This document shows, piece by piece, positions 1 to 64,000 of a stretch of 64,000 bases of DNA. Source of the DNA: Epiperipatus broadwayi (taxonomy: Eukaryota > Animalia > Onychophora); the NCBI GenBank assembly GCA_028023455.1, contig JAQFVV010000001.1, positions 22,568,001-22,632,000 on the forward strand, given 5' to 3'. The notes under the pieces were generated by a model that saw only the letters and a program-made list of their open reading frames with translations, was not told the DNA's origin and did not search any database. Position 1 is the first letter of the stretch. Every line of letters begins with the position of its first letter. The position numbers and the translations under genes were made by a program.

Positions 1-998
1 ATTAATTCCACCCTTATCAAAACAACATCAATTTATTTATACATCCAAATTAATTTTGACCAAAACATTTACATCTTTCTTTATAATTATTTTTATCTAC
101 GAAGACTATCCAATATTACAAAAATCTTTTTCTTTATATACATTTTGGTTAGTTAAAATAAGGAAGACATCATTAAAAATATCTATAGTTACCAGTCTAG
201 AATCAGACTTCTATAAATATGCAAGCAAGTTAGCTTTGATCCAAAATTTTATATATGTTTTTGAATCCTAGATATTTCAGTTAGTTAGTATGAAAAAACA
301 AAAGACTGCTAAAAATGTGGGCACAAATCCAATGCTCCTTATTAAAAATAGACAGAAATTAGCTTGAAGATTTGAATATAACCTTACTATCTAGGGTCTT
401 CTGATCATTTAAGCTTACAATAGCAGGTTCTACAATAGAATAAATAGAGTAAATTACTGCCCTAAAAATTAACAGAAAATGTTATATGATGCATTTTATT
501 TCTTAATATATATATATATATTCTTGCTATTAAAAGGTGTGAAGGTTGCCTTGACAGCAGTTAGAAATATTGGTTGCTATATTTACTGTGAATGTTTAGG
601 TGGTTACTGGTTGGAAACTAATTATATATATATATGTGTGTATGTATGTATGTATGTAAGTTTTCCAACTGATTTTGAAATATTAATATAGAGAATTGCT
701 TGCAAATGTTAAGAGTAATATTCTTTCAAATACAAAATTAAATAAATAATAACTTTAGTTATTAAAAAAAAAAAGATATAAGTAAAGTGTGCATTCAGAA
801 CATTAAAAAAACTGTAGTCTTTAACAAGATAATAAAAAAACCTCATTTCTCAATGAAAGATTATATAATATGTAAAATAAAATAAATCTGACATTTTTCA
901 CTACTTTGTTTAATTTAGTACATGTGCATTATATATAAGAAAAGATAAATTTCATGTGTCATTATAAAAATTTGCCAGGTAATTTTAAAGTAACTTAC

Positions 999-1168
999 TT
1001 CAAGTTTTTCTGAAATCCATTCAAAATTTTTTTTAACTTGTTCAAGAGCTTCAGCCGTAACTTCTTTCAGTTCTCTGTAAACCTGCTTGTCCTTCATTAA
1101 ACGTTTATCTCCAGATGGCCATAATCGCCAAGAATCACTATCAATAATATCAGCAACTACAACTTCAC
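999..1168 (-). CDS. PAICS: PAICS coding exon 5 (end of SAICAR synthetase domain; gene continues beyond the left edge)
   Basis: Acceptor TTTTAAG|GT, donor GAA|GTAAGT; 170 nt, phase 1 to 0. Translates [57 protein letters not shown] (DSWRLWP and DKQxYR motifs). No AIR carboxylase exon was recognised in 1-998. Confidence 0.95.
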
Positions 1169-2029
1169 CTTAAAATAAAAAACAAGTCAGCAATAGTATA
1201 AATAAAAACAAAGATTTACAGAATATTTTAAAATTACTTTTTTATCAATTTAAAGTTTCACTTTTGTTTATGTTAAAAATCTCATTTACAAACTACCAAA
1301 AATTTCTTTAAAATTACAAAGTTAATTGAAAAATCAATATTTTACTACAAATAAACTACAAATAGTTGTTTAACTTTAATATTTCATTTTTAGTCTCTTA
1401 TTTTAATTAAGTAAAATTTCATTCCATCAAAAATATATCTATAAAAAGATGTATGGTTATGTGGTATATCCTACACAAAGATAAATTTAGTGCTGTATTA
1501 AAAGTACAAGTCCATATCAATTATCCAATAACAATAAAAAACAGAAGCAAAAAAAGACAAATCTTTGGTTGGTATTTATTAGTTTAAAAAATGTGCATAT
1601 ATATAAAATGATAAAATTTTACAGTGTTAACAAATATATAATACTTGAAGAAATAAACCATAAGAGAGAATAAAAATCAGTCAAAATATTATTGCAACTT
1701 CATTGGAATTTGGCTTATATTTGAATTTGTAACCTTGGGTTAATTTTTGCTCATTTTAACAATCTTGCAAATAAATTACCAAATATCAAATACGTAAGGA
1801 TAGATTTTTACAATGCTGAACTAATAAAAACCAATATGTAACACTTAGATTGATAAATATCTAAATGCTTGCTAAGTCAATTTGAATAAGTTGCAATAGT
1901 TGATTTGATATTTACTTTTACTTGGACAACAGACAAAGATGAATTATTTTTATCTGTATGTAATTTTGATATTAGGGAATACTGCATTAATATAGCCAGT
2001 GCTCAGAGGTTTATTGCAACAAGTATTTC

Positions 2030-2065
<36 letters not shown>

Positions 2066-3808
2066 ATAATAACTAAAGGTGTGTGTGTGCACAATATTAT
2101 AAAACAAGATCTAATAATGCTTTAAGAAAACTTAGGATGTGAACAAAGATTGATGCTAATATTATTAATTTAATATTAATAGTTACAGCAACTTTAAATA
2201 AAACAAATTATTATGACTGATAATGTAATCCCTACAAAAAACATTTTAATTCTTTTCCTATAATTATTAAATTACAGTTAACATATATATGTACAAGTAT
2301 ATACAAGCATATTTATATATAAATTATAAAAATCCTTCATTTACTAAAACACCTATAATATTCCTTATGCTTTTCTATTTAAATATCCCTAAAATTTTAA
2401 AATTATAAAACATTCTATACAATTCTTTTTCTTTTTATTGGAAAAATTTCATCATTACATTAGCATTTTAGATAAATCAAGTTCATGTCTATAAAATTAA
2501 TTATGATTTAAATTAAGATATATGACATTGTACAATTAGAATTTTAAAAAAACTTGTCAATGTTAGCATAAATGTAACTGTTGTATTAGTATTAATAGAA
2601 TTTTGGTCAAAACATCAATATTAATAAATTTTTCCAGTTAAAAAAAAAAGTAGTGTATTTTCATATTTTTTATGACTATGAATATTTATATATAAACTAA
2701 ATTGGGTTTAACTATACTTTATAAATAATTTTATATATAGTATTATGTATAGAAATATAATATCTAAATTTTATTAATGGTATATAATATATACACGCAT
2801 AACTATAAATATGCGACTTTTTTTCGCATTAGTGAAGCTATAATTTTACTAATTTATAATAGCTTTGCTTAGCACTTTCGAGATTTCATGTTTGAATAAC
2901 CAAATTTTATAATATATATTGAGATAAAAATGTCTCTTACATGTATTACACACTTAAAAAGAAACTAACATAGTGTGTGTCATAGATTTGTGTTATCAAG
3001 GAAAAGAAAAAAATCACACTAATAAGTAATTTATAGAAATTATTAAAAAAAAAAACCCCCACTGTAGAATGACTGAAAATTTGGAAATACATAAGTAAAT
3101 AGTAATTTAAATATAAGAAAATTTCTGTGCTAGTAAAATTAGATTATTTAGTATGATTCTAATATAAAAATTATTGGTTAAATTATTTATTTTATTTAAA
3201 AAAATATGAATTGTAGAAATAAAATAAGTGCTTGCTTTATTAAGGTAATAAAAGTGAATTACTGGTGTTTATTTTAAATCAGAAAAAGTGACTAAAGATT
3301 AAATTTTAACTTTAAAAAATATTTCTATTCTTAATCAAAAGAGTGCAAAATTATGTTGTTTTTGTTTTGTGAATATAAATAGAAATACAACTATAGTATT
3401 TAAATTGGATTGTTATTATTATTATTATTAAAAATTTATTTTTACTCTTGTTTTCTGTGAAATACCTATCTAAACAATTCTTATCAATAAGCTATAAATA
3501 CTGAGTCACATGTTAATTCAGCAGCTTGAAAAGTCAAAAAGAGATTCACATACTAATAGGACTAATATGCCAATTGAAAATTTAGCTGTAAGAAAATATA
3601 AACTGACATTTATTCTCATGACAACTGTCAGGTTTACTGAATATTGCTAAGAATCAGTAGATCACTGTTGCTTTTTTGGAATTTAAATATGTATCTATCT
3701 GATGCTGATCAAGAAACCATTAACCATAACTTAGTCATTGTTTACACATTAATAAAAATATTCATCACCTAAATTATTCATACATAAAGCAAATGTATAT
3801 ATATATTG

Positions 3809-6800
3809 TACCCTCCTCCTTATATAATTTATCAATCTTTCACTAAAATATTACACTATCTTTAATATATAATATATAACTTATCAATTAATATATCAAT
3901 ATAATTAATATATTTATACTAATTATAAATTTATTACTTAATTATCAATATCTTTCAACATCTCAATCAATCTAACTTCTAATTATCCATTTAACTCTAC
4001 CATTCTTATATTTTATAAATAACTATCTTTAATAATATAATAAATAAATCTCAATCTTTTTAAAATATAATTAAATCTCATCTTCTAATTATCTATAATA
4101 ATATCATAATAATATAATTTAATATCAACCTAAATACCCTAACTTATTCTAATATAACATAACAATAATAATCTTTATTATATCTTAATCTTATCTATTA
4201 TATACTTTTAACATTAAAAATAATATATACATTCTTTATTTCCATATTATCTTAATTTTAAAATATACAAAATATAATTTAACAATCTCATAAATAATAT
4301 TATATCTTATCTTCATTATATTATTTTACATTAATATTATATCAATCAATTTCTATAAATTATATAAAAAATATTTATTTCTCCTCAAATAATAATATAA
4401 ATTCATATAAATATTATATTCAAAATCTGTTCAAATTTTTAAAATAATAATTACACATCTTTAAACAACTTAACAAATTTATTTACATCAACTTTAACAA
4501 ATAACTTATTTAACTATTTATTCAAATGGAACTAAAAAAATAAAACAAAAATAAAAAAATATAATAAAATTTTAACTTTATATTTATAATCATAATAATA
4601 ATTTATAATTTATAAATGTTTATCAATAACATTTAATAATTTATGATTTAAATTTAATAAAACATCATTTGTCATCAATTAATAAATAAAATTTTATAAA
4701 TATATTCATTACATAATAAATAAAAACTTTAATAATTTAAATCATTTCACTTAATCTATTTATTTATTTATAATACTAAATAATTTTATCATATTACTCA
4801 AATATTAATTAATTATAATGATAAATTTTAATATAATAACAATTATAATTAAACATTTATTTCATTCAATATAATTCATACTAATCTTACAAAATACAAT
4901 ATATATTCTTCTAAAATAATATTTTAAATTATTCAACAATTTCAAATTTTTATAAATATTATATTAAATAAAATTTATATTTTTTTATTTAAATCATTAC
5001 TTTTTTACTTTTATTCTTATTCCCTCTAATAAACTTCTACCTACAAATCATTTTAACTTATTTAACTTCAGAAAAATAGATACCAATTTTAAAAAAAAAA
5101 ATATTTATCCAAAATCTCATATACCTCATCATCTATACTAACCTTCAATCAAAATATAAATTTCTACATAAAATTAACTTAACTTATCTAATAAAAATAA
5201 AAAATAAATATAATTTTATAACCCTTAACTGAAAAAAAAATAAATAACTTACACTAATAATAAATCTAATTCCTAATATTTAACAAAACATTAAAATTTA
5301 TTCACAAAGAATCATATAATTATTTCTAGTTCTATATTATATTTATAACTTTCACCATCAATTTAAATAATATAAAATAAAATCTATTATTAATCTTATC
5401 TTATATTATTTAAATATTAACATTCATTCAACAATCAAAAACATTTTTATCTAAAGAAAACATAGTAAATACATCAAATTATTATTATCACAAATTTTTA
5501 CCAAAAGATATTTAATACCATCCTCCAATTATTTTAAAAATATTTAATTTCACCAACAATTATCTTTAAAAATCTTTTAATATAAAAAAATTCAATAAAA
5601 TTTATATTAATATTTACTTTTTAAAAAAAAACTTTCCTATCTTTAATAAATAATTTAATTAAATATTTATTTAGTTAATAAAAAAACATATCAAAAACCA
5701 ATGCTTCTTCCACTATAATTTTCTTTTTCCCAAATTTCACCAAACATACTTTTCACTTTTTAAATTTTTTAAAAAAACTTCTTTTTTTAAAAAAAAAATA
5801 AAGAAAATTTCCAACAACAAAATAAAATAAAATATTTATGACTAGATTTTTCTTTAAAAAAATATTTTAAATATTAATTTTTATAAATTTTATAAGTTTA
5901 TTTAATTATTTTTAATTGATTTGATACCTAATTATTTATCTAACAATATTTAGGTAAGATATTTTACTCCAATAAACTTAATAATATAATATTTTTATAT
6001 ATATTTCCCATAAATTTCCAATTTATTTCCTTTTAAAACTACATAATTTATCCTTTAAACCAAAAGATAACAAAATTAACTATTTCCACTTTTAAGTTAT
6101 AACTTAGATTTATAATTTATAAAACTTTTAAAAAATTTCTCTCTTAAATCTTTTTAAAAAATAATACCACACTTTTAAAATATAACAACATATTATTTTA
6201 ACTTACCTCCTATTAACCTTTTTAAATTTTTATATAAAGCCAAACATTTATCCTTACTTCAGACATTTATAAATATATCAGACAAGAAATATAATAAAAT
6301 AACACTCATTTAAATTTATAAATATTTTAAAAAAACTCCTATAATTTTAAAACAATTTTGAGCCTAAATTACTACTATTCTAACCCTTACGATTTAACAC
6401 CCCTCCGAACAATGACTGTTTTATACCAAAAACCCCACCTGATGGTAAATAAACAACAACCATATTTCATATTTTCCAACAAGACAAATAAAAAAAATAA
6501 ACTATTTAATATTTATTATTTATCACATTATTAAATTCTTAAAAACTTTATCTTTATTTAAACCATAACATTTTTAAATATTCCTTCTTTATTTCCTTTT
6601 AACTTTTATAAGATTATTTTTAAACAAATAAGCTATTTTTATTTTTAATTTTAAAAATCAGATTTAATATTTCACATTAATTATTTTTATTTTTATTTCG
6701 AGCAATATAATATTTATAAATTTTAACAAATTTAAAATATTTTCAACTCTAAAAAACCCCAACACACCACTTTTCAACAGACACAACGCGAAAACTAAAA

Positions 6801-7085
6801 AAAAAAAATCATTTTTAAAAATAAATATTTTTAAAAAAAAAACTTATAACAATTTTTAAAAAAATCGTATAAAACAAATATTAACTTCTATCATTCTAAA
6901 ATAAAATATTTATATTTATTTATTAAATATTAATCTTTATCAACAAAAAATCATTAATTTTAACTTGTCTTTTTAAACTTAACTTTAAACATTTATTTAT
7001 TAAATTTATTAACGTATAATACTTTCCCAACCAACTACATTCCCAACCCCCAAACACCCAACCACAACCCACTTTAAACACTCAA
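3809..7085 (-). mobile_element. Full-length-sized, heavily decayed RTE-type LINE with near-total loss of C on its sense strand
   Basis: Minus-strand motif remnants occur in the correct order and spacing: HQVGFLV (6424-6444, APE GVGF), LDKNVFD (5434-5454, xAFD), TAA-GGG = QG (5222-5227), DD (5128-5133), GIRIKVKK (~5000-5023), FEIVE*FK (4923-4946) and KRLRFIYYIIKDSYL*NI...MLKDI (~3947-4063, RTE-like C-terminus). Motifs were read by eye through many stops and indels. Confidence 0.55.
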
Positions 7086-8764
7086 GTGTTAAAAAAAAAC
7101 CAAAACAAATTTAAAATTTAGACAAATCCACAAAAGCACAGAAAGAAAAAAAGAAAATATTGCTACACAGTCAAGAAGTAGTCATTTATCTAAATATATT
7201 CACATATGGAGAAATGAAGGCAAATATTACAAATGAAGTACAGTATTAGTTTCATATGTATGACACACATTATTTACACTCAAACAGGAAAAATAAATAG
7301 AATATAAAAGCATTCCTTGTAAAATAACTTTATCTGATTTATAAAAAAGTCATTCTCACAGAAATGCAAAATCTGGATAAATATACTTTCTAGCACTAAT
7401 ACATTTAAAATAAATGATAATTGAATTAAAAAGGACATTTCTTCCTGCTGTAAAACATCTAACTATAACCTGGGAAAGATTGTCAAGGATATTTTTTTCA
7501 TGAATTTAATTACAGTAAAAATGTTGTACTCATTTTTTAATTTTTAAATCTTTTATTTAGAAAGTGAAATCTTGATTGACAACACTAATTTATTTAAACT
7601 AAAGTGATAATTTATTATTAAACAAAAATTATAAACATTGATTATATTTGTAAATTATAACAAGGTTATATATTAATATATTGCATCTATAATCAGGCAA
7701 ACACATATAAACCAAAATAATTAATTTTGATTTTATTAGAGTATTGAGCCTTAAACTAGAGAATCAACTAAGATAATTCAAACTTTATGTCTAATATACT
7801 TTATTGTCAAGTACATGCATGTATCTGCATATCTATTTTAAGATCAAATTTGGTAATTTTAAAGTTGATTAAGACATGTATACCAGACCAATATTATTGC
7901 CATTGTACAACTTCATTTCAATATATATGTACAGTGACAATTATTTTATATTCATTTGAAAATGTTCAGAATCAACTAAATTATCTATTCGTTAAATTAG
8001 CACAATAAAATATTTATATCTGCCAATAATCTATTATTTAGAGATTTATTACTTTATTTATTCAATACATCTTTATATATTTAATAAATGTAGTTGTCCA
8101 TCCACAATTTCATATATACATTTTTGGACTACATATCTTATTCATACATTTTATCAATATACCTCTCAGGTTCCTTACTTTATGTGAAATTGCTCTTGAT
8201 GGTTAATAACAAACTATGTATGTGGATTCTATATAGTTCCCTTTGGGAATCAGAAAGATTTTGGAGCATTACCAAGAATCATTTTCAAGAACCACACTCA
8301 TAAGAGAATTGACTGACAAGGAATGTCTTGATGGTTACACATTATTGTTGGCATACTTAATATCTATTAGTAAGTACATATACTAATCTATGATTATTTC
8401 TAACATTTATTATCCATTGTTAACCATTATCAATGAATCACATATAATACATATTTGGTGCAACGTGTGGCCAACCAAGTATATAAAAGTATACAAAGTT
8501 GTAACACACTCCAAACCATTTCAAATTATATATATATATATATATATTGTGGTACGAATGTATATTAAAGTTCACAAATGTCCTTGTCCAAACTTGCCAT
8601 TCTTATTAATAAGGTATCAACTAGAAAGGGATTCCCTTTTAGCTACTAGGATAGATGGATGGCATAATGTGAATTTCTTAATTATATTTAACAAAAAAAA
8701 GAAGCTGAAATTTTCATTATTTCTGCAATGTTTACATATACATAATACTTGAATTACCCATTAC

Positions 8765-8902
8765 TATATTATTCCAGCTATCCTTCCCTTTTGAATAAAG
8801 AAAGCTCAAATTTTTAGCAGTCCCGTGAAAAGGGAATTCCTTTTCAATGAACTGCTAAAATTTAAGCTTTATTTAAGGGGGAAGTGTGGCTGGAATAATA
8901 TA
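8765..8902. mobile_element. Short palindromic MITE (~138 bp)
   Basis: TATATTATTCCAGC pairs with GCTGGAATAATATA, TTAGCAGT with ACTGCTAA, and the centre is GAAAAGGGAATTCCTTTTC. Confidence 0.7.
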
Positions 8903-9199
8903 ACTATAGGGCGTTTCAAGTATTTTATATAGATTTCAGCTAGCATTATGAATTGTTTCTATTTCATATATATAAAAGATAGAAGTTTAAACTTATTCTT
9001 TAAACTGTCTACACATATATCTAAAATAAATAATTTCTAAATGAATATATACATATAATTAATAAATAACTATATGTTTAGTAATTATTCTTTTAAATCA
9101 CATTCTTAGCATTACTATACAAAAAATTAAATATTATTAGTCCTTTCTTTCTAAGGTCTAACATTTCTCATATCTCATTGCTAAAAGAAGTATAAAGAT

Positions 9200-9620
9200 G
9201 AACCTGTGATCCAAAAGCAAATTTCTTACCTTTTCTACAGTTATTCTAAAGAAGTAGCTTTTTCCTATATAAGTTCCTGGATTTGATCTTGGTTCACATT
9301 TTTCAAGAATAGGCTAATTAGTTTCTCTTATTTTTAATGATAATTCGGAAGATATAGCCACAACATTAAATTCTCTTTATGACTTACTTAGCCACCCTTT
9401 GATTTAATGAATAGTACTATACATATTTCTTATGGACAAATATTTAAATACCCTAAATATCAACAAGCTACTTTGAATGTTTGTATTACATGTCAGGAGT
9501 TTTACAGCAATCAATAAAAAATAATTTCTTCGGCTTTTTTGAAAAGGCATTTTGAAGTCTATAGCAGTATTAAATGATGCTAATTCATCTCTCCTATCTT
9601 ATTACTCACAATAATATAAA
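9200..9620 (-). mobile_element. Possible LINE post-RT fragment
   Basis: Minus-strand NQRVASKS*REFNVVAISSELSLKIRETN*PIL resembles the RTE-type pattern RIxKA..F......LS.K.....Y....PIL. Weak. Confidence 0.4.
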
Positions 9621-10758
9621 TAATAACTTTTATTTCTTTTCTTATAAAATAAATTATAATAATCCTCCCATATTCATGCCATTTGATTGGAAATCTTGGC
9701 ACAAATATTGAAATTCACGGATAATAGAACTGTATTTACTATGTACATGCATACATAAATGTGAGAATGTGCTGTAATTGCATTATGAAATAAAAAATAA
9801 ACCATGAGATATGAAAATTGCAAATATAGGGAAATATTATATAATAACTAATTGCTTTTTTTGGTATGTATTTTTCCAAGAAAAAACATTTTAAGAAGTT
9901 TTCAGTCATAAAAAGTATTCAATTTATTTTCCTTTATTCAAAGATTAATTAAGAAAGATTTCTGATTATAAAAATAATTATTTATATTTCAGATTTTTTT
10001 TTTTGTCAACAGATTATCCTGCACAATAAATATAATAAAGTATATACATTAATTTCTTATATTATTATTCTACATTATTTCTACTATCATTTTTAAATCT
10101 GTGTGATGTCTATAGTACAATGATTTGACCATATATGTATAATAATTTTTAGGAATTTATTGATTTCAGTCGAATGTAATTTAAGTTAGAATTTTAACCA
10201 ATCATTGACTTTAAATAACAAATGCTAATAAGTGTTAAGAAATATGGGCATGTGGCATACACCATCTTTTTTGTTATTGTATTGTCTTTGTAACAGTGTT
10301 TTTATTTTTTCTGTATCTTAAAAATTGGATTTTTTATTAAAATTTTAATAAAAGGAGGTTTTTAATTTTTTATTTGATTTTTTTTTTAAAACTTTATACA
10401 AAAGAATTAACGGCAATGTTTTTTTCTGAAAATATAATTTATTAATCTGATATGTATGCATTGAAATCAGAGGGCTTAGAATCTAAGTAACTGTACGAAT
10501 ATAATATTTTTCATATAAATAATTTATAATTTTGAGTTGCAGAATGTCTGCTTGGGTTCTGATACATATATATATGTAATTCCTTGGATTTAGATCCTAA
10601 CCAAAGATAAATATGATATTTCAGAGATAATATTTTTTATTACCTGTAACTATACAATATTTTTAATATAATTTTTTATATAAGTAATTTATAATGCAGT
10701 AGGATAATGGTTTGTTTTGTGTTGTAGAATGTCTGATTGCGTTCCAATATATATATAA

Positions 10759-13700
10759 CAGGGGTGGCCAACTTTTGTGTTCATAAGATCGACTTTTTAT
10801 TTTGAAAATGTGTTGCGATCGACTTGTTGTCATAGGCGTAGTCTAAGTGGAGAAAGATGTGAAATACATACTATTTTTATATATCTACTGACGTAAAAAA
10901 ATAACAATTATTTAACAGGCTAAAAAACTCATGCCCGTGGGAATTAAAGCAACATGGTTAATTATTAACAATATTTATTAATTCAAATTAGCTACTGATA
11001 AAGACATATTTAGAATTTATTTTATTATCTTAACATTAATGGGAAAACTGTGTTTGCATGTCTCTAACCAAGGAATCATAATTAGGTGTATATCCTGACA
11101 AAGATAATAATAAAGAATCCTCAGTATGGGAATCAGTTAGGACAGAACGTTGTTTAGTCTTCGTTAACTTTAAGTATGAAAATGCCGATTCTCACAGGTA
11201 TGTAGATCCGAAACAAGAATAAATATATTCGCTGCATTTGATGATATTGGGATATTTTTCTTGGTTGACGTATTTCCAAAAATCTTCTTCAAATTTTCTA
11301 GCTTGTAAGATTAAATCAGTTTGTAAAATTATAATTTCATTTTCTAAAGCCTTTTGCTCCATATGAAATATGTCTGAAATTTTTTGGCTAATGCATTTCA
11401 CATTTAAATCTATTTTAAAAGGAAAAGATATACATTCCACAATTTCTTTAATTTTTTCAAATTCTTGGAATCTTACTTTAAAATCTTCAATTACTTTTTG
11501 GATTTCCGCGATATATTTGTCGATATTATAATTAATATTTTTATGCTTTTGTAGGTGATCCGCCATATTTGGAAAATGATTCAGATTATTTTGTTGCAGA
11601 TCTTCTATTAGCATAATAAATTTTGTCTTATATGCATCTACACAATTGATCATACCAATTACTGTTTTATTTCTACCTTGTAATTCTATATTTAAATGAC
11701 TTAACATTGAAGTAAAATCGGTTAGAAAAGCTAAGTCACTAAGCCAAATTTCATCATTTAAATTTTCACATTTACCATCTTGCTCGTGGAGAAAATCTAT
11801 TACTTCAGGCAATAAATCACGAAATCGTTGCAGAAATTTAGCTCTGCTTAACCATCTTACATTGGTATGTAATAATAATTCAGGTTGGCCTTCATCAAGC
11901 TGCAGTTGGAAGAGACGTTGTTTGGAGGAACTTCCTCAAATTGAATTAACAATTTTAAACGCTATGTCCATTACTTCTTTTGTGTTTAGTCTCTTGCTGG
12001 CTAACACTTGCTGGTGAATTATACAGTGGTAGCTCAAAAAAGCTGGAAATTCATCTTCATTTTGACATAGGGCTATAAATCCATTTATGCGACCTATCAT
12101 TGCAGCTGCACCATCCGTTGTTATTGAAACTAATTTAAAAAGTGGTACTTTCAAATCATTGAGCAAGTTTTTAAAGGCTTTGAATATATCTACACCTCTA
12201 GTTCTTTCTTTCAAAGAAATCAGACCCAACAATTCTTCTTTAGATGTAAAATCTTTAAAAACCATACGAATGAAAACAAGTAATTGTGCTGTATCACTTA
12301 TATCTGTTGATTCATCACATTGAAGGGAAAAACAAGAACATCTATTAATATCATTATATAACTGTTCTTTTACATTTCCACTCATCTTCTCAATTCGTCG
12401 CACCACAGTGTTTCAAGATAGTTGCAGATCTTGAATTGCAGCAATAATTTCACTCTTGTTATGAAAATTGCTAAAAAGTGAATCTGACATTTCCAAAAAA
12501 ATTTCCTTTACAAATTCACCCTCGGAAAATGGTTTACATTTTTTTGCTAAAAGATAATTTACTTTGAATGATGCAGTAGTTACTGCTTGAGACTTCAACA
12601 TTGGCTTTTTAAAAACTTTTTGTTGATTTTTTAACTGAGTTTTAAGATCCCTAACTTTACGTTTTCTCAATTCGGTACTTTGTGGATAATCTGTTTGATA
12701 CTTGATATGTAAAGCTAAAAAATGTCTCTCCAGATTACCCTTTTTAGCAATGGCTATCGAGGTAAAGCATATTAAGCAACAACATTTACCATTCACCATT
12801 GTAAAAAAGTAGTCGAGTTCCCATTCTTCATTGAAATGATAAGTTTTCGATTTTTTTGGTTTACTACTCATGTTCATGGGTATACTAAAATGAAAAAAGA
12901 AATACTTATGACAATTTTATTTCCCCAAACTTAACTGATAAAAATTGAATATTCAAAGTAAATAATAAATATTGAATTAAATATTTTGCAAAAAAATTAA
13001 AAATTCATGAACTGCGATCATTAACTCTGTTAACGACTTCAGCTTAAACGTCTGTTGCCGAGAAGGCTCATTAATCAAGTAAATAGATAGATAAGAAAAG
13101 CCACAATTTAAATTAAAGCATAAGAAAAGGTACTTACATTTTAAACAGAAGAAAAATTGAAACTCCACGTGGTCACTGTCAATAGATAATATTGATTAAT
13201 AATAATAATATTGTTCATACGGGGGCACTACTACATTCTGAATATTAGAGAATGAACATTTAGTAATGAAAACTGGGAGTTTTTATATCAAATCTTTCTC
13301 TTCCCCTGCATAAGTCATAACTTGTTGACAACTTTAAGTCTTATATTTTAGTTTTTAACACTACTTTATTAAATCTTAGTAAAGACAAAAACTCCAGCTG
13401 AGTAATTGATAAATAGTGCTGGTCCAGTGATTTTGCCTTTGTCTTACATTTATTTTTAATTTTTTTTTTTTTTTCAAATTTCAGCTCTTGGTTACCAGGT
13501 GAGAGTCAGAATGATTTCCAAGAAATAAATCTTTTTTAAAAAAGAGATTTCAGTTCTGTAAAGTGTAAACATTCTCTTATATGTGTAACACTATCACACT
13601 GAATTTAGGATTTTATATGCAAATGCAAGCAAATTTATAAACTAAATTTATAATAACTTAAAATAGATAATTTAGAAAAGTTATTTAAATTCACAAAATC

Positions 13701-16300: not shown

Positions 16301-17780
16301 TTTTGATAGTTACAATATTTGCTTCATTTTTTTTAAATTTTAAATCCATGTTCACAATCATAAATTAAATAATGTCTTTTTAAATATAGGAATAAATTTC
16401 TTATAAATATAAACCGATTAATTTTTTCCCCCCTCTTTTTGCGTTTTTTAATCCAACCCAAAAAAACAACCCCCCCCCCCCCCAAACCTTCAAAAAATAA
16501 CCATTAAGTTTATTTCAACATTTTTTATTCTTCTAATTATTTCTTTTAGTTCCACTTTAAAAGTCTAAATAAGCACAATTATTCACTATGTCAATCGTGT
16601 TCTCATGTATATACAACTGACTAATGAATGCTAATTTACTAAATATTTCTTTAGTTTTACAAAAATTTATTCTGAAGCCTATTCTTCAAATTGGATAAAT
16701 GTACTCCATAATTGATTGCTTTCATCATATTTTATTTCAAAAATAATATCCATAAATAGAATACATTTTAAATAAATACTATTTTATACATAAATTACTT
16801 CTTTAACAAAGTATAAATCATACCAGTAAATAAATTCATATATAACAAATTTTTACAAATTTTGACATTACATCAAAATAATAATTAATCAACTTCTCAA
16901 GTCATGCTTACAAATATTATTCCTCAGCTGACAGCAAAGCTATCTGGTAGAATCTCAATGTAACATACAAAGCTTTTTACTTTTATGTACCAAAATTCAG
17001 ATTAAATATTAAAACACTAAACAATTATGATGCAGTTTTTTTTAAGTATTAAACTTTTAAGTATCATAAATTAGCTGCAGCCAAATGAAACATGAGATTT
17101 GCAAACTATGAAGTGATTGTTCTATAGATGATTGGTTGATATTTTGACATGATATCACAGTTTTTAAGACTTTGTTACATGATTGGTATGATTTAAACTT
17201 TATTTAAGAAATAATTTGTTTATGTAAGATTTCCAGTTTGATTAATTTTATATATATATATTGCAAATATTTGATATAATTTATAAAAGACAAAGTTTTT
17301 ACATGTTTGATTTGGTTAAGCTTATACTAATTTTCTTTTTGATCTTAATATTATGCATACAAAAAGCAAATTCACATGACTATTTTAAAGATGTGGTAAT
17401 GGCTCATTAAAGTTTATTTTGCACTTCTAAAATTGAAATGCCAAAATAAATTATATTAAGGATTTGGAAAAACAAATTGCCACCAACAATGATTAAATGT
17501 TAGTTTGCTCATAGTACTATTCTACTGCCTAATAAATCTAATTGCCTTCAGATAGTGCACTTAATATATAGAGAAAAATAAGAAATCTAATTGACTTAAC
17601 ACAAAACTATAACTAATATAAACTTAATCTATATAATAATAATAATAGTTCATGAATGCCACATGTGATAAATTTTCATAAAAAAATTGATGAAATGCAT
17701 TAAAATTTAGAGATTATAGCATTTTATAGTTTTAAGAAACAAACTTTTAAAAGTTTAAGATTTCTATTTCAGATTAGTAC

Positions 17781-17988
17781 CTGTTGAAGGAATAACTCCA
17801 AATTCTATTTTCATATCTATAAGTGAACAATTAAGAAATGCCCAAGCTTTTTCAAGAACTTCAAAAACAGCAACTGTGGTCTTGCTGATAATATCAATTT
17901 CATGAGGCCCAATTACAACTCCTCCAAGGGTCAACTTAGCATCCACCAATTGTTCATACGACCATTGAGGATCATGATTAGCATCATC
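17781..17988 (-). CDS. PAICS: PAICS coding exon 4
   Basis: Acceptor TTTTAATAG|GAT, donor G|GTACTA; 208 nt, phase 0 to 1. Translates [69 protein letters not shown] (DDANxDP and LIDMKIEFG motifs). Confidence 0.95.
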
Positions 17989-31907: not shown

Positions 31908-33082
31908 CATCACATGATCACATTTCCTATACTAGCACATTAATTGTTGATAAACAGAGCAAAACTCTCCATACAGTATTGCCACCTGTGCTAAACAGAG
32001 TAATCAATGGATGCCAGAAGGCTTGTGCATAAAATCCCTATCTAATGCCTACTCATCCAATATCCCCAGACTAGTTTCTGGCTTGTGGCCTTCATCAGTG
32101 AGGAGCTTTGGATCTGAGAGCACTGCATCTAGATCTTAGGATCTAATGCAACCCTCTAGCAACCACCTTTTATCTCTAATTAACTACAAAACTATGAGAA
32201 TGAAATTGAAAACACAAAAAATATTTTCAATCTAAGCTCAATAGCTTATATAGTCATATGGGTCTGAACTCAGTTCAGCACCCATACACTTTGGTGTCTT
32301 TGGCTCTTTTACAACCATAGCCACCACTATCCTATTGAGCTTAGATTGAAAATATTTTTTGTGTTTTCAATTTCATTCTCATAGTTTTGTAGTTAAGTAG
32401 AGATAAAAGATGTTTGCTAGAGGGTTGCATTAGATCCTAAGATCTAGATGCAGTGCTCTCAGATCCAAAGCTCCTCACTGATGAAGGCCACAAGCCAGAA
32501 ACTAGTCTGGGGATATTGGATGAGTAGGCATTAGATAGGGATTTTATGCACAAGCCTTCTGGCATCCATTGATTACTCTGTTTAGCACAGGTGGCAATAC
32601 TATAAGGAGAGTTTTGCTCTGTTTATCAACAATTAATGTGCTAGTATAGTAAATGTAATCATGTGATGCTTAATGGTTTAACACCAATCCTGCCTAATAG
32701 GATAGTGGTGGCTATGGTTGTAAAAGAGCCAAAGACACCAAAATGTATGGGTGCTGAACTGAGTTCAGACCCATATGACTATATAAGCTATTGAGCTTAG
32801 ATTGAAAACATTTTTTGTGTTTTCAATTTCATTCTCATAGTTTTGTAGTTAAGTAGAGATAAAAGGTGGTTGCTAGAGGGTTGCATTAGATCCTAAGATC
32901 TAGATGCAGTGCTCTCAGATCCAAAGCTCCTCACTGATGAAGGCCACAAGCCAGAAACTAGTCTGGGGATATTGGATGAGTAGGCATTAGATAGGGATTT
33001 TATGCACAAGCCTTCTGGCATCCATTGATTACTCTGTTTAGCACAGGTGGCAATACTGTATGGAGAGTTTTGCTCTGTTTAT
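31908..33082. repeat. Fold-back element family A, cluster 1 (forward arm, inverted arm, second inverted copy)
   Basis: Forward arm 31908-~32280 plus a ~60 nt core (to ~32335). Inverted arm 32332-32681 ends in CATGTGATGCTTAATGGTTTAA. A second inverted core plus arm spans 32696-33082. The arms are nearly identical. Confidence 0.9.
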
Positions 33083-61550: not shown

Positions 61551-62379
61551 TTTTAGATGAATGATAATAGAAAGTATAATTTTAGATAATTAATATGATA
61601 TGATTTTTAATTAGTTGCCGAAAACGCTTTCTAACATTGGCTAAGGTAAAAATTTATTCCATCTATTTATTAACAGTAGCTGAGTGCACTTTTAGCTAGA
61701 GAAGACAGTTTCATAATTTTCATAAGGCAGCTAGCATGCTGCAACATTATCAGAAAAATACAATGATTAAAAACATGCTTTATATATTGGGATTTTATAG
61801 AGTCAAATTTCTTAATCAAAAAGATATCCAGTTTTATTAAAAAATAATTGGTTATTCATATAAATTTATTCACATTATATAGCTTCAATACATTACAGTA
61901 AGAAATTGTTTCTTACTAGTACTTGATGAACAAATGCCCTTCATCATACCAAAAAAAAGGGAAGTCCAAGAAAAATGCTAAGAAGAAATTAAATAATTCT
62001 GCCCATTCAATTAATGACACAGAGACCAATTTATAAAAGTTCAGATCCTAGGCAGGCGGCGGGAAGCAAAAAGAAAATATTGGCACCTGATGAAAGATTT
62101 AAAGACTCCAAAAAACAGAAGAGATAAATCCAAAGAATACAGTACACACTACTGAAAACAACCTAGGACATTACAGAATGAGCTCCCTGAGGGACCATCC
62201 CTGTCAAAAATCAGACTAAACCAAGGCATTCTTCCAGACTCACACAACAGCAAATAAGCGATGACAAAGACCAATTGTCATCGGCAGTTGAAATATCTCT
62301 CTGTGATGACTTAGAAGAAATATTCCAATAACTAATTCAATCCCACCCTCAGTCTAGCTTGCATACCTACACCACAAAG

Positions 62380-64000
62380 TTATGACTATAAAAATATCAG
62401 ATAAATGTCAAAGGCCTTCACTCTTTCAAAAGAGTATAGGCTATCAGCCACTGGATTCAACAATACACACCACAGATTATATGTCTCTCAGAAACAAAGA
62501 TAAATCTCCACACACAAGTCAATCTAAACAAACTTTTGGGTAGATTTGGGTCCTTCCATCACTCTATCTTTTCCTTGCCAACAGCAAAAGTTGCCATTCT
62601 TATTCACAATAGTTCTCTCTTTACTTCATTTAGGATGAACCAGATTAATCAGTACCTAATAATAGCTACTTTCTTTCACCAATCTTTTACCATCAATATC
62701 ATCATTTATATATATTTCTATAAAATTTTAACACTCATCAACTAATTCAGCAAATAAACCTTATCCTTGCTTCTAATCCTTTTCCAACAATCATGTTTGG
62801 AGACTTCAACAGTACACATAAAGAATTTAACTCCAAGTACTTACATCTCATTAATAGTAACCTTAGTGGAGAGTTTTCCCCTCCAGATGCCTTCTCATTC
62901 TATACACGAAAATACACACCCTTGATTGACCTGTTACTGTTTTCCCCTGAACTTCAATTGATCATCACCCCATTTCTTGAACTGGTTCCATTCTCAGACC
63001 ACTTTGCACTCACCATTAATCTGAATGTTAACTTCAATACTCAATCAACTCCCAAAATTTAATAGCACACTCAGACTGCTTCAAAAAAATACCACACTAA
63101 AAGCAGTAATCTCAGAATCCTACATATTTTTCAATATACTCACTCTACATCTGGTGGAAGCTTGGTTTGCCTTTATCAATATTCTGAGAGACATTATCAA
63201 ACACTTCACTTATAATAACAAAGCATCATCATTCATTATTAAAGAGATGGAAGCCATAAACAATTTTCTCAAATCCCTTCATTGCAACCTGAGTTAAAAC
63301 AACAATATAAAAACAAATTATACTGGCTGAATATCTCTCTATTAAAAAATTCAAAATTTATCTTTCCCAGCCCCATTGCTGGTCCAGAGGCTACATTAGA
63401 TGGGCTCTTGGATATATAGAAAACTGTACTCTCATCTATCATGATTAAATAATAAACTTTTCACAGATGCTATCATGCTATATGAGACCTATAAATACTT
63501 CAAAACTAAGATAACATCTAACATACTCCTCCAATGCCATGCAATAGACCAAGTAGGTTCTATTGAGCCTATGGATATCTCAGGAACAGATTTACTAAAT
63601 AAACAGATCCTTCCCAGACAGTCCTGAGATGCTATCTGTTGCACCTCTCCAGATTCTCTGTACCCATTATATTTAACATGCTCAATTTCCTATCTACCAA
63701 TTCTTATCAAACTGATGGTCTGTGCCCTATTTCTCTGGTCCATTTTATTAAGAAAAACCTTCTTCCTTCTCTGACGGATAATCTCAGACCCATCTCTATG
63801 ACTCCCATCATGATTAAGGTGATTGAATCAATGATTAAGGACAAAATTCAAGGAAAAATTCTTTTGTCAAGCTCGGAATTCCAGTTTGCTAGAAAAGGAA
63901 CCTCAACAGCCAATGCTATCAACCTTCTCCAGATCATCCATGATCACATCAGAACTAACAGAAAAACTTGCCTTATAGTTGTTCAGCTTAACATTGCTGG
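62380..64000 (+). mobile_element. L1/Tx1-like LINE ORF2 (APE endonuclease plus start of RT), degenerate, truncated by the window end
   Basis: QINVKGLHSFKRV*AISHWIQQYTPQIICLSETK (APE N-terminus), FGDFNS, IDLLLFS, FSDHFAL, then LRPISMTPIMIKVIESMIKDKI and FQFARKGTSTANAI. Contains stops and frameshifts. The lysine-rich stretch at ~61950-62380 may be ORF1 or 5' sequence. Confidence 0.88.

Follow-up and report, generated by a model that had tools for sequence, protein, structure and literature searches.

A guanine desert in the Epiperipatus broadwayi genome is a solo LTR from a retrotransposon family poor in cytosine on its sense strand

Here we analyse a 64,000-nucleotide (nt) stretch of the genome of the onychophoran Epiperipatus broadwayi (contig JAQFVV010000001.1, positions 22,568,001 to 22,632,000 of the forward strand; hereafter the window), in which a block of some 3.3 kb is almost devoid of G on the + strand. 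We are highly confident that this block is a solo long terminal repeat (LTR) of a Ty3/gypsy-type retrotransposon, whose sense strand is the minus strand of the window, where the desert appears as a shortage of C. An earlier interpretation made from the letters alone, referred to below as the sequence-only reading, had recognized a retroelement in this orientation with C depleted on its sense strand, but took it for a long interspersed nuclear element (LINE) of the RTE type that had been converted wholesale from C to T. On balance, we favour a different origin for the composition: the copy in the window is probably a solo LTR of an inherently C-poor family, in which the bias was built up over many replication cycles.

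The G-poor block and the anatomy of its family

The base counts of the sequence-only reading were reproduced in full. The + strand lacks G altogether across positions 3809-4428 (620 nt), has seven in 3809-5040, and has 54 in the whole of 3809-7085 (1.6% of 3277 nt), a block in which C amounts to 13.6%. Both flanks are strand-balanced, with 437 C and 430 G in 1-3808 and 644 C and 616 G in 7086-12000, such that each of the two bases makes up ~11-13% on either side of the block. Outside the block, the longest other G-free run in the 64-kb window is 98 nt, and taking the outside-block G frequency of 12.05%, the chance of a 620-nt G-free run is ~1e-35 per position. The window holds no C-free tract comparable to the block, nor any 300-nt segment that is similarly C-poor. 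The G desert is thus confirmed as a real observation. The features that underlie its interpretation, with their positions in the window, are the following:

3809-4428, + strand: the 620-nt G-free run, which is the C-free 3' part of the solo LTR seen antisense
3807-7140, minus strand: solo LTR of 3334 bp from a gag-only family of Ty3/gypsy type, placed by homology over almost its whole length to the ~4.33 kb family LTR
7131-7140, minus strand: 5' terminus of the LTR, TGTGCTTTTG, with its C retained; the older copies L002 and L003 start identically, right after (TA)n
3807-3813, minus strand: 3' terminus of the LTR, GGGTACA, the inverted match of 5' TGTRCCC, located from the window sequence and the ends of the family
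3796-3806, minus strand: (AT)n flank directly past the 3' end of the LTR; (TA)n borders young and old copies on both sides, and the window copy on its 3' side only
17767-17988, minus strand: exon of PAICS, recognized by a domain match to SAICAR_synt (E = 1e-10, profile positions 119-179)

A search of the genome with the block yielded 1539 candidate places; 40 places were scored, giving 47 matches. The 26 young copies that were fetched are 89-99% identical to one another (most of them 95-99%) and 80-83% identical to the window copy, and three older copies (L002, L003 and L030) are as diverged among themselves as they are from the window copy. The LTR of the family is ~4.33 kb long, and that of the window is an old, diverged copy carrying many small deletions. 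Its left edge lies at 3807 and its right edge at 7140, slightly past position 7085, where the sequence-only reading had placed the end of the block, and its sense strand between these edges is composed of 40.3% A, 1.8% C, 13.6% G and 44.3% T. Depletion is strongest at the 3' end of the element, a gradient that had been described beforehand and is confirmed here, as sense-strand C rises from 0.9% in the 3' part of the LTR to 2.5% in its 5' part.

The termini are sharply defined. Young copies start with TGTGCCCTTTTG, and 24 of the 24 copies examined terminate in ..GGTACA, nearly all of them in ..GGGTACA, so that the LTR has the inverted-repeat ends TGTGCCC...GGGTACA in young copies (7 bp) and TGTGC...GGGTACA in the window copy. 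Within the last 622 nt of the window LTR, the sole sense-strand C is that of the terminal GGGTACA; read from the other strand, this C of the final ..TACA is the G at position 3808, just beyond the desert as first delimited. The window LTR is bordered by CTTTC on its 5' side and ATATA on its 3' side, with no matching target-site duplication seen, and in young copies the (TA)n on both sides would mask any such duplication. Tracts of (TA)n stand on both sides at the LTR ends of nearly every copy (L031-L036 and L002-L030), which suggests a strong target preference.

The arrangement of a fuller element was read from locus L035, where two LTRs in the same orientation surround a 3866-bp internal region (5' LTR up to 2042, 3' LTR from 5909); at L005 and L007 an LTR is followed by the same internal start. 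Located 17 nt past the 5' LTR of L035 is TGGCGCCCAAACG, a putative primer-binding site (PBS) that resembles the complement of a tRNA 3' end, and 2 nt upstream of the 3' LTR is a purine run, GAAGGAGGAGGA, a candidate polypurine tract (PPT). The internal region contains a 762-codon stop-free frame (gag), the C-terminal third of which has Pfam matches to Arc_capsid_dom and to Ty3_capsid, the latter (E = 7e-5) falling short of the curated cut-off. A word search of proteins returned no relatives of this Gag; an exhaustive search was needed to bring out 349 of them at E up to 1e-3, some with protease, reverse transcriptase (RT), RNase H and integrase, and a profile of the Gag family matches the Arc capsid structure 7r24 (E = 9e-15). 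Pol functions (protease, RT, RNase H and integrase) are not among the contents of the L035 internal region, which holds the gag frame only, and the element is therefore non-autonomous. The family is thus a non-autonomous, gag-only Ty3/gypsy-type element with giant LTRs that inserts into (TA)n. We take the block to be a solo LTR because local blastn of the fetched loci against the window found no internal-region homology anywhere in its 64 kb.

Across 1828 aligned sites, the two LTRs of L035 (1-2042 and 5909-10000) show 29 differences, all but one of them on the upstream LTR; the two may not be sisters of one insertion, and a tandem or recombinant arrangement is possible. The pair was also considered as a source for an in-situ substitution spectrum and set aside as uninformative, given 29 differences with 28 on one LTR.

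This anatomy is at odds with a full-length RTE LINE that was converted from C to T in one event, an explanation that we find highly improbable. It would account for a size of ~3.3 kb, a nearly C-free sense strand and a simple-repeat 3' flank; however, it conflicts with the LTR structure and the linkage to a gypsy-type gag, and even young copies lack what a LINE should encode. Specifically, there is no open reading frame (ORF) of at least 100 amino acids (aa) in L002, L003, L019 or the young copy L005, the last of which has only two of at least 50 aa, and ten stop-free sense-strand pieces of a young copy gave no Pfam match to RT or apurinic endonuclease (APE) at E up to 10. The argument that reading frames open up once T is restored to C carries no weight, since all stop codons start with T and such a restoration opens any frame. 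The 3' simple-repeat tail and variable 5' truncation of RTE elements were likewise looked for and rejected, as copies of the family have (TA)n on both sides and one precise, shared 5' terminus (TGTGC..). Because (TA)n is on both sides of the copies, the apparent LINE tail is an insertion target.

Cytosine poverty across the family and its substitution spectrum

The shortage of C on the sense strand is common to the whole family. Among young LTRs, C makes up 7.3-8.0% in the 23 most similar, alongside ~13% G, and 6.3-7.0% in three that are more diverged; the old copies have 3.6% (L002), 2.5% (L030), 2.0% (L003) and 1.6% (the window copy). In the 2308 alignment columns shared by the young majority and the four old copies, 5 columns are invariant for C versus 135 for G, and a tally of column patterns finds C shared by at least two lineages in ~2.4% of columns and G in ~13%. 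Reconstructed from these patterns, the common ancestor of the sampled lineages is already C-poor, with a predicted ~2.4% C. The leader has 4.9% C and the region after gag 6.9%, and in gag itself the twofold codons end in T 197 times versus 31 times in C, and in A 204 times versus 83 times in G, with C peaking in the conserved capsid part. Among the C that remains, CpG is present at 0.90-0.95 of expectation, which means that it is not specifically avoided.

In the 3' part of the LTR that corresponds to window positions 3809-4428, the other lineages carry 7-51 C in our tally, and of the 22 columns there in which two or more other lineages have C, 15 are gaps in the window copy, 4 are T and 3 are A. 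As its composition was inherited from a C-poor family, the window copy was not converted in one editing event, and only 4 C>T changes are private to it. The wholesale conversion of this copy proposed by the sequence-only reading is contradicted by these data; comparison with the family, which that reading had itself set beforehand as the refuting test, found the family to be C-poor on its sense strand. Thirty copies from different loci share the bias, which breaks off precisely at the LTR termini and is graded between subfamilies. These properties, which are mirrored in the codon usage of the stop-free gag frame, also argue against an artefact of assembly, basecalling or polishing. The stretch is contained in four DNA sequencing runs from one sample (and in no RNA run), which may be the assembly's own source and thus leave room for such an artefact, although we give it almost no credence.

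The direction of change was read from alignments of the old lineages, in which we counted changes private to each lineage in 986 columns without a gap within 3 columns in any lineage. The counts were redone on these gap-free columns because C columns of the young copies had fallen disproportionately into gaps of the old copies, an excess that was treated as aligner gap placement in indel-rich, AT-rich sequence. On the sense strand, the substitutions of the old lineages are asymmetric:

C>T at 12 of 42 sites versus G>A at 35 of 385 (p = 7e-4)
A>G at 68 of 1736 sites versus T>C at 15 of 1606 (p = 1e-8)
T>G 21 times versus A>C 4 times (given without a p value)

In these lineages, G has been gained from A ~4 times as often as C from T. 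By our own arithmetic, the old-lineage rates lead to an equilibrium of ~1.3% C and ~15% G, and the window copy, with 1.6-1.8% C and 13.6% G, appears to have reached the end point of a process that acted over a long time. The young copies have an A>G excess of their own, with 115 singletons versus 44 for T>C (p = 4e-8), and their singleton rates predict ~8% C, which matches the young LTRs. Neither type of change has an APOBEC-like or ADAR-like footprint. The C>T changes have no neighbour (dinucleotide) preference and are not clustered, and the A>G singletons have G as their 5' neighbour in 18% of cases versus 13% in the background, and hence no 5'-G avoidance. Only 12% of within-copy gaps between A>G changes are at most 30 nt, which is similar to the other classes of change, and none of the four transition classes is clearly above the others in clustering. 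The strand-specific C>T change postulated by the sequence-only reading therefore stands as an excess in the old lineages, but the sequence context that would point to editing is missing, as is a significant excess in the young copies.

Possible origins of the bias

A second retroelement family in this genome has a bias of the same polarity. At L034:1-1900 (minus strand), in the flanks of the fetched loci, is a LINE with pieces matching RVT_1 and zf-RVT. Its sense strand contains 5% C and 24% G, with the third codon positions at 2.2% C versus 21.9% G, and a second copy of it (L018:3761-4731), 79% identical, has the same bias; the L034 LINE is unrelated to the LTR family and is broken by a (TA)n run. 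An internal control is provided by DNA-transposon-like frames in the window (11195-12916, minus strand), in which third positions are symmetric, with 11.5% C and 12.2% G. These three adjacent stop-free frames match zf-C2H2_12 and DUF4371 and look like the remnant of a DNA transposon. Because the DNA-transposon frames are symmetric and another LINE in the window is oppositely skewed, the strand bias is a property of particular retroelement families, not of host DNA.

We infer that the bias enters at a stage of replication because it tracks the orientation of the element at many loci, because it is common to a LINE and an LTR element, whose shared step is the sense RNA, and because it is absent from the DNA-transposon ORF and from the LTR's own flanks. 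That it arises on, or during the making of, single-stranded sense nucleic acid, with spontaneous deamination or wobble misincorporation as the favoured sources, is a proposal on which we are divided and which we advance tentatively. The bias has three components, namely C>T on the plus strand, A>G on the plus strand and very few new C, and it probably accumulated across many replication cycles rather than in one editing burst. Hydrolytic deamination of an exposed strand produces C>T and A>G on that strand, and G.U/G.T wobble misincorporation during sense-strand synthesis produces the same pair of changes. Since context and clustering are lacking, deamination or wobble is favoured over an APOBEC-like or ADAR-like enzyme. 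Purifying selection has probably kept C only at the LTR termini, the PBS and the Gag capsid domain, and the PBS would in addition be recopied from tRNA in each cycle.

Several points weigh against the accumulation of the bias over many replication cycles. First, C>T and G>A singletons of the young copies occur at 0.77% and 0.59% per site, respectively, a difference that is not significant (p = 0.18). A pressure that removes C is therefore not demonstrably active now, and the pressure was stronger in the older lineages, making it either historical or lineage-specific. Second, ancestral C sites are few, numbering 42 in the clean columns, and the comparison, which covered lineages of this family alone, gives no direction to the changes that led up to the C-poor ancestor. 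Third, the private branches of the old copies mix changes that preceded insertion with changes made in situ, which leaves the link to replication an indirect one. Finally, the bias is not universal among the retroelements of this genome. The LINE at window positions 62000-64000 (+ strand), fragments of which match Exo_endo_phos_2 (E = 2.7e-7) and, weakly, RVT_1, has the opposite skew, its sense strand containing 23% C and 12% G.

Enzymatic editing is an alternative that we regard as unlikely. A host cytidine deaminase, AID/APOBEC-like or other, would edit C to U in the sense RNA or plus-strand DNA as a defence, cumulatively or in bursts, and perhaps together with ADAR. Such an activity would fit the strand-specific loss, with C>T per site in the old lineages at ~4 times G>A, the presence of the bias in two unrelated retroelement families and not in the DNA-transposon ORF, and the extreme end state of 620 nt without C. 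It is opposed by the lack of dinucleotide preference and clusters in C>T, by A>G changes that neither avoid a 5' G nor cluster, and by the young copies, in which C>T is not in significant excess. Moreover, gag remains open despite the bias, which is a better fit for slow pressure than for bursts. A search for AID/APOBEC-like genes had been suggested by the sequence-only reading. Six-frame, exon-by-exon scans of the genome detected none of the domains PF08210, PF18778, PF18782 and PF18750 (APOBEC_N, NAD1, NAD2 and SNAD4), although divergent or intron-split genes could escape such scans, and we count the absence as weak negative evidence. The same scans did find PF02137 (A_deamin, ADAR-type) at 3 loci, and deaminase genes of the ADAR type thus exist in this genome. 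One of them (G000:C6469:29096-30067) has a full-length A_deamin domain in a 760-aa stop-free frame and is possibly an intronless or retrocopied ADAR gene, and further ADAR-type loci, on C73 and C30, are multi-exon. A further alternative would be an undescribed mutator, present or past, in this invertebrate that strips C from the RNA-sense strand of retroelements only, with a polarity opposite to that of APOBEC3 editing and without a recognisable AID/APOBEC gene. It would have struck at least two unrelated families, a gypsy-type element and a LINE, strongly enough to bring third codon positions down to ~2% C and to leave LTRs with hundreds of bases lacking C; we consider this, too, improbable.

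Three known mutational signatures were compared with the data and rejected. For APOBEC-type hypermutation, the polarity is reversed, as the sequence-only reading had correctly observed that C, not G, is lost from the sense strand, and the 4 C>T changes private to the window copy have neither context nor clusters. For ADAR hyper-editing fixed by retrotransposition, an A>G excess is present, but without avoidance of a 5' G and without clusters. For a mutator similar to repeat-induced point mutation (RIP), which the sequence-only reading had listed among the candidate causes, the expected pattern of C-to-T on both strands of duplicated DNA with a dinucleotide preference is absent, as the loss is confined to C, with G maintained at the host level (13%), and there is no preference for CpA or any other dinucleotide.

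We think it quite unlikely that C was lost in situ after integration, either because transcription of the element itself or its R-loops exposed the non-template strand, or because transcription of PAICS did so. The window LTR is co-oriented with the PAICS exon at 17767-17988, and it probably lies in a PAICS intron, given that patterns for the AIR-carboxylase domain, which follows further downstream in PAICS, had no match anywhere in the window. Transcription-associated asymmetry in mammals shows up as C>T and A>G changes of the non-template strand, which equals the signature seen here, and a sense strand with positive GC skew would be prone to R-loops. However, the flanks of the LTR, which lie on the same strand as the PAICS exon, are unskewed on both sides, so that the LTR ends sharply delimit the bias; copies elsewhere in the genome share it, which is incompatible with PAICS transcription as the cause, one of the candidates named in the sequence-only reading. 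In addition, synonymous sites in the gag of intact young elements are already biased, and young singletons, most of which probably arose in situ, lack a C>T excess.

Selection on the sequence is, in our view, very doubtful as the source of the bias. A sense strand free of C has no CpG and could evade methylation or restriction that depends on C or CpG, or the RNA could require pairing by G.U only. That C survives nowhere but in the termini, the PBS and the capsid domain, all of them functional sites, would agree with selection, but dead solo LTRs at separate loci go on losing C, which selection on an active element is unable to bring about, and the substitution rates of the old lineages alone roughly predict the composition. 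The near-expected frequency of CpG among the remaining C also argues against it. As for RNA structure, no sense-strand fold of the window LTR exceeded shuffled controls in eleven 300-nt windows (z -1.2 to +1.7), the sole outlier being one antisense window (z -2.5), and Rfam gave no RNA family match in a full element.

Two further observations were made outside these elements. The flank L013:1-500 is strongly skewed, with 15 C versus 72 G in 500 nt, and has no clear coding frame. In the window, three identical 61-codon stop-free segments (31954-32136, + strand; 32440-32622, minus strand; 32896-33078, minus strand) sit in a locally GC-rich kilobase (38% GC), with related segments near 38.9, 40.3 and 41.5 kb; they represent an interspersed repeat.

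Relation to known systems and significance

The window element shares with other Ty3/gypsy solo LTRs its TG..CA ends with a short inverted repeat, the family order LTR-PBS-gag-PPT-LTR (PBS and PPT being putative), a capsid homologous to those of Ty3 and Arc, and the occurrence of scattered solitary LTRs. It differs in the ~4.33 kb length of the family LTR, the lack of pol in the sampled internal region, insertion into (TA)n, the extreme composition of one strand and the lack of a visible target-site duplication in the window copy. Elements of the LARD type are long-LTR, non-autonomous elements of plants. TR-GAG elements are also non-autonomous LTR elements of plants (PMC13570524, PMC8704663). 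Both types share with the present family long LTRs, a short internal region that contains Gag only or nothing, and reliance on an autonomous partner; the present family is set apart by its animal host and by a C-depleted plus strand.

APOBEC3-type hypermutation produces clustered sense-strand G-to-A changes with dinucleotide motifs, copy by copy (PMC4866542). In the same study, C-to-T changes were used as a negative control and invertebrates were reported to be devoid of editing (PMC4866542). The E. broadwayi elements share with that system a strand-specific transition bias tied to the orientation of the element, but differ from it in their reversed polarity, in diffuse changes free of context and in a bias inherited across the family. 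Long-term nucleotide bias is also found in retroviruses, and lentiviral genomes are A-rich and C-poor; common to both cases would be a replication-linked composition of the sense strand that shapes synonymous positions while genes function. Unlike in lentiviruses, C here falls to 2-8% (~2% at the third positions of the LINE), it is T and not A that takes its place, and G is retained. In animal mitochondrial DNA, C>T and A>G occur on the strand that spends time single-stranded, making it G+T-rich. The present case differs in that it concerns nuclear retroelements, and the exposed strand would be RNA or plus-strand DNA.

At this locus, our conclusion is deflationary: the block is an ordinary solo LTR that offers no evidence of one-off editing or of a defence system. 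What calls for attention is that one genome harbours two unrelated retroelement families whose sense strands are almost free of C while their genes stay open, and that the polarity is opposite to that of the only well-known retroelement editing signature and comes without enzyme-like context. A host activity as the cause would amount to a retroelement mutator of a new kind. If the bias instead stems from replication itself, the case illustrates the extremes that such biases can reach, and base deserts on one strand in large AT-rich genomes would then be the inherited composition of repeats and not the footprints of editing.

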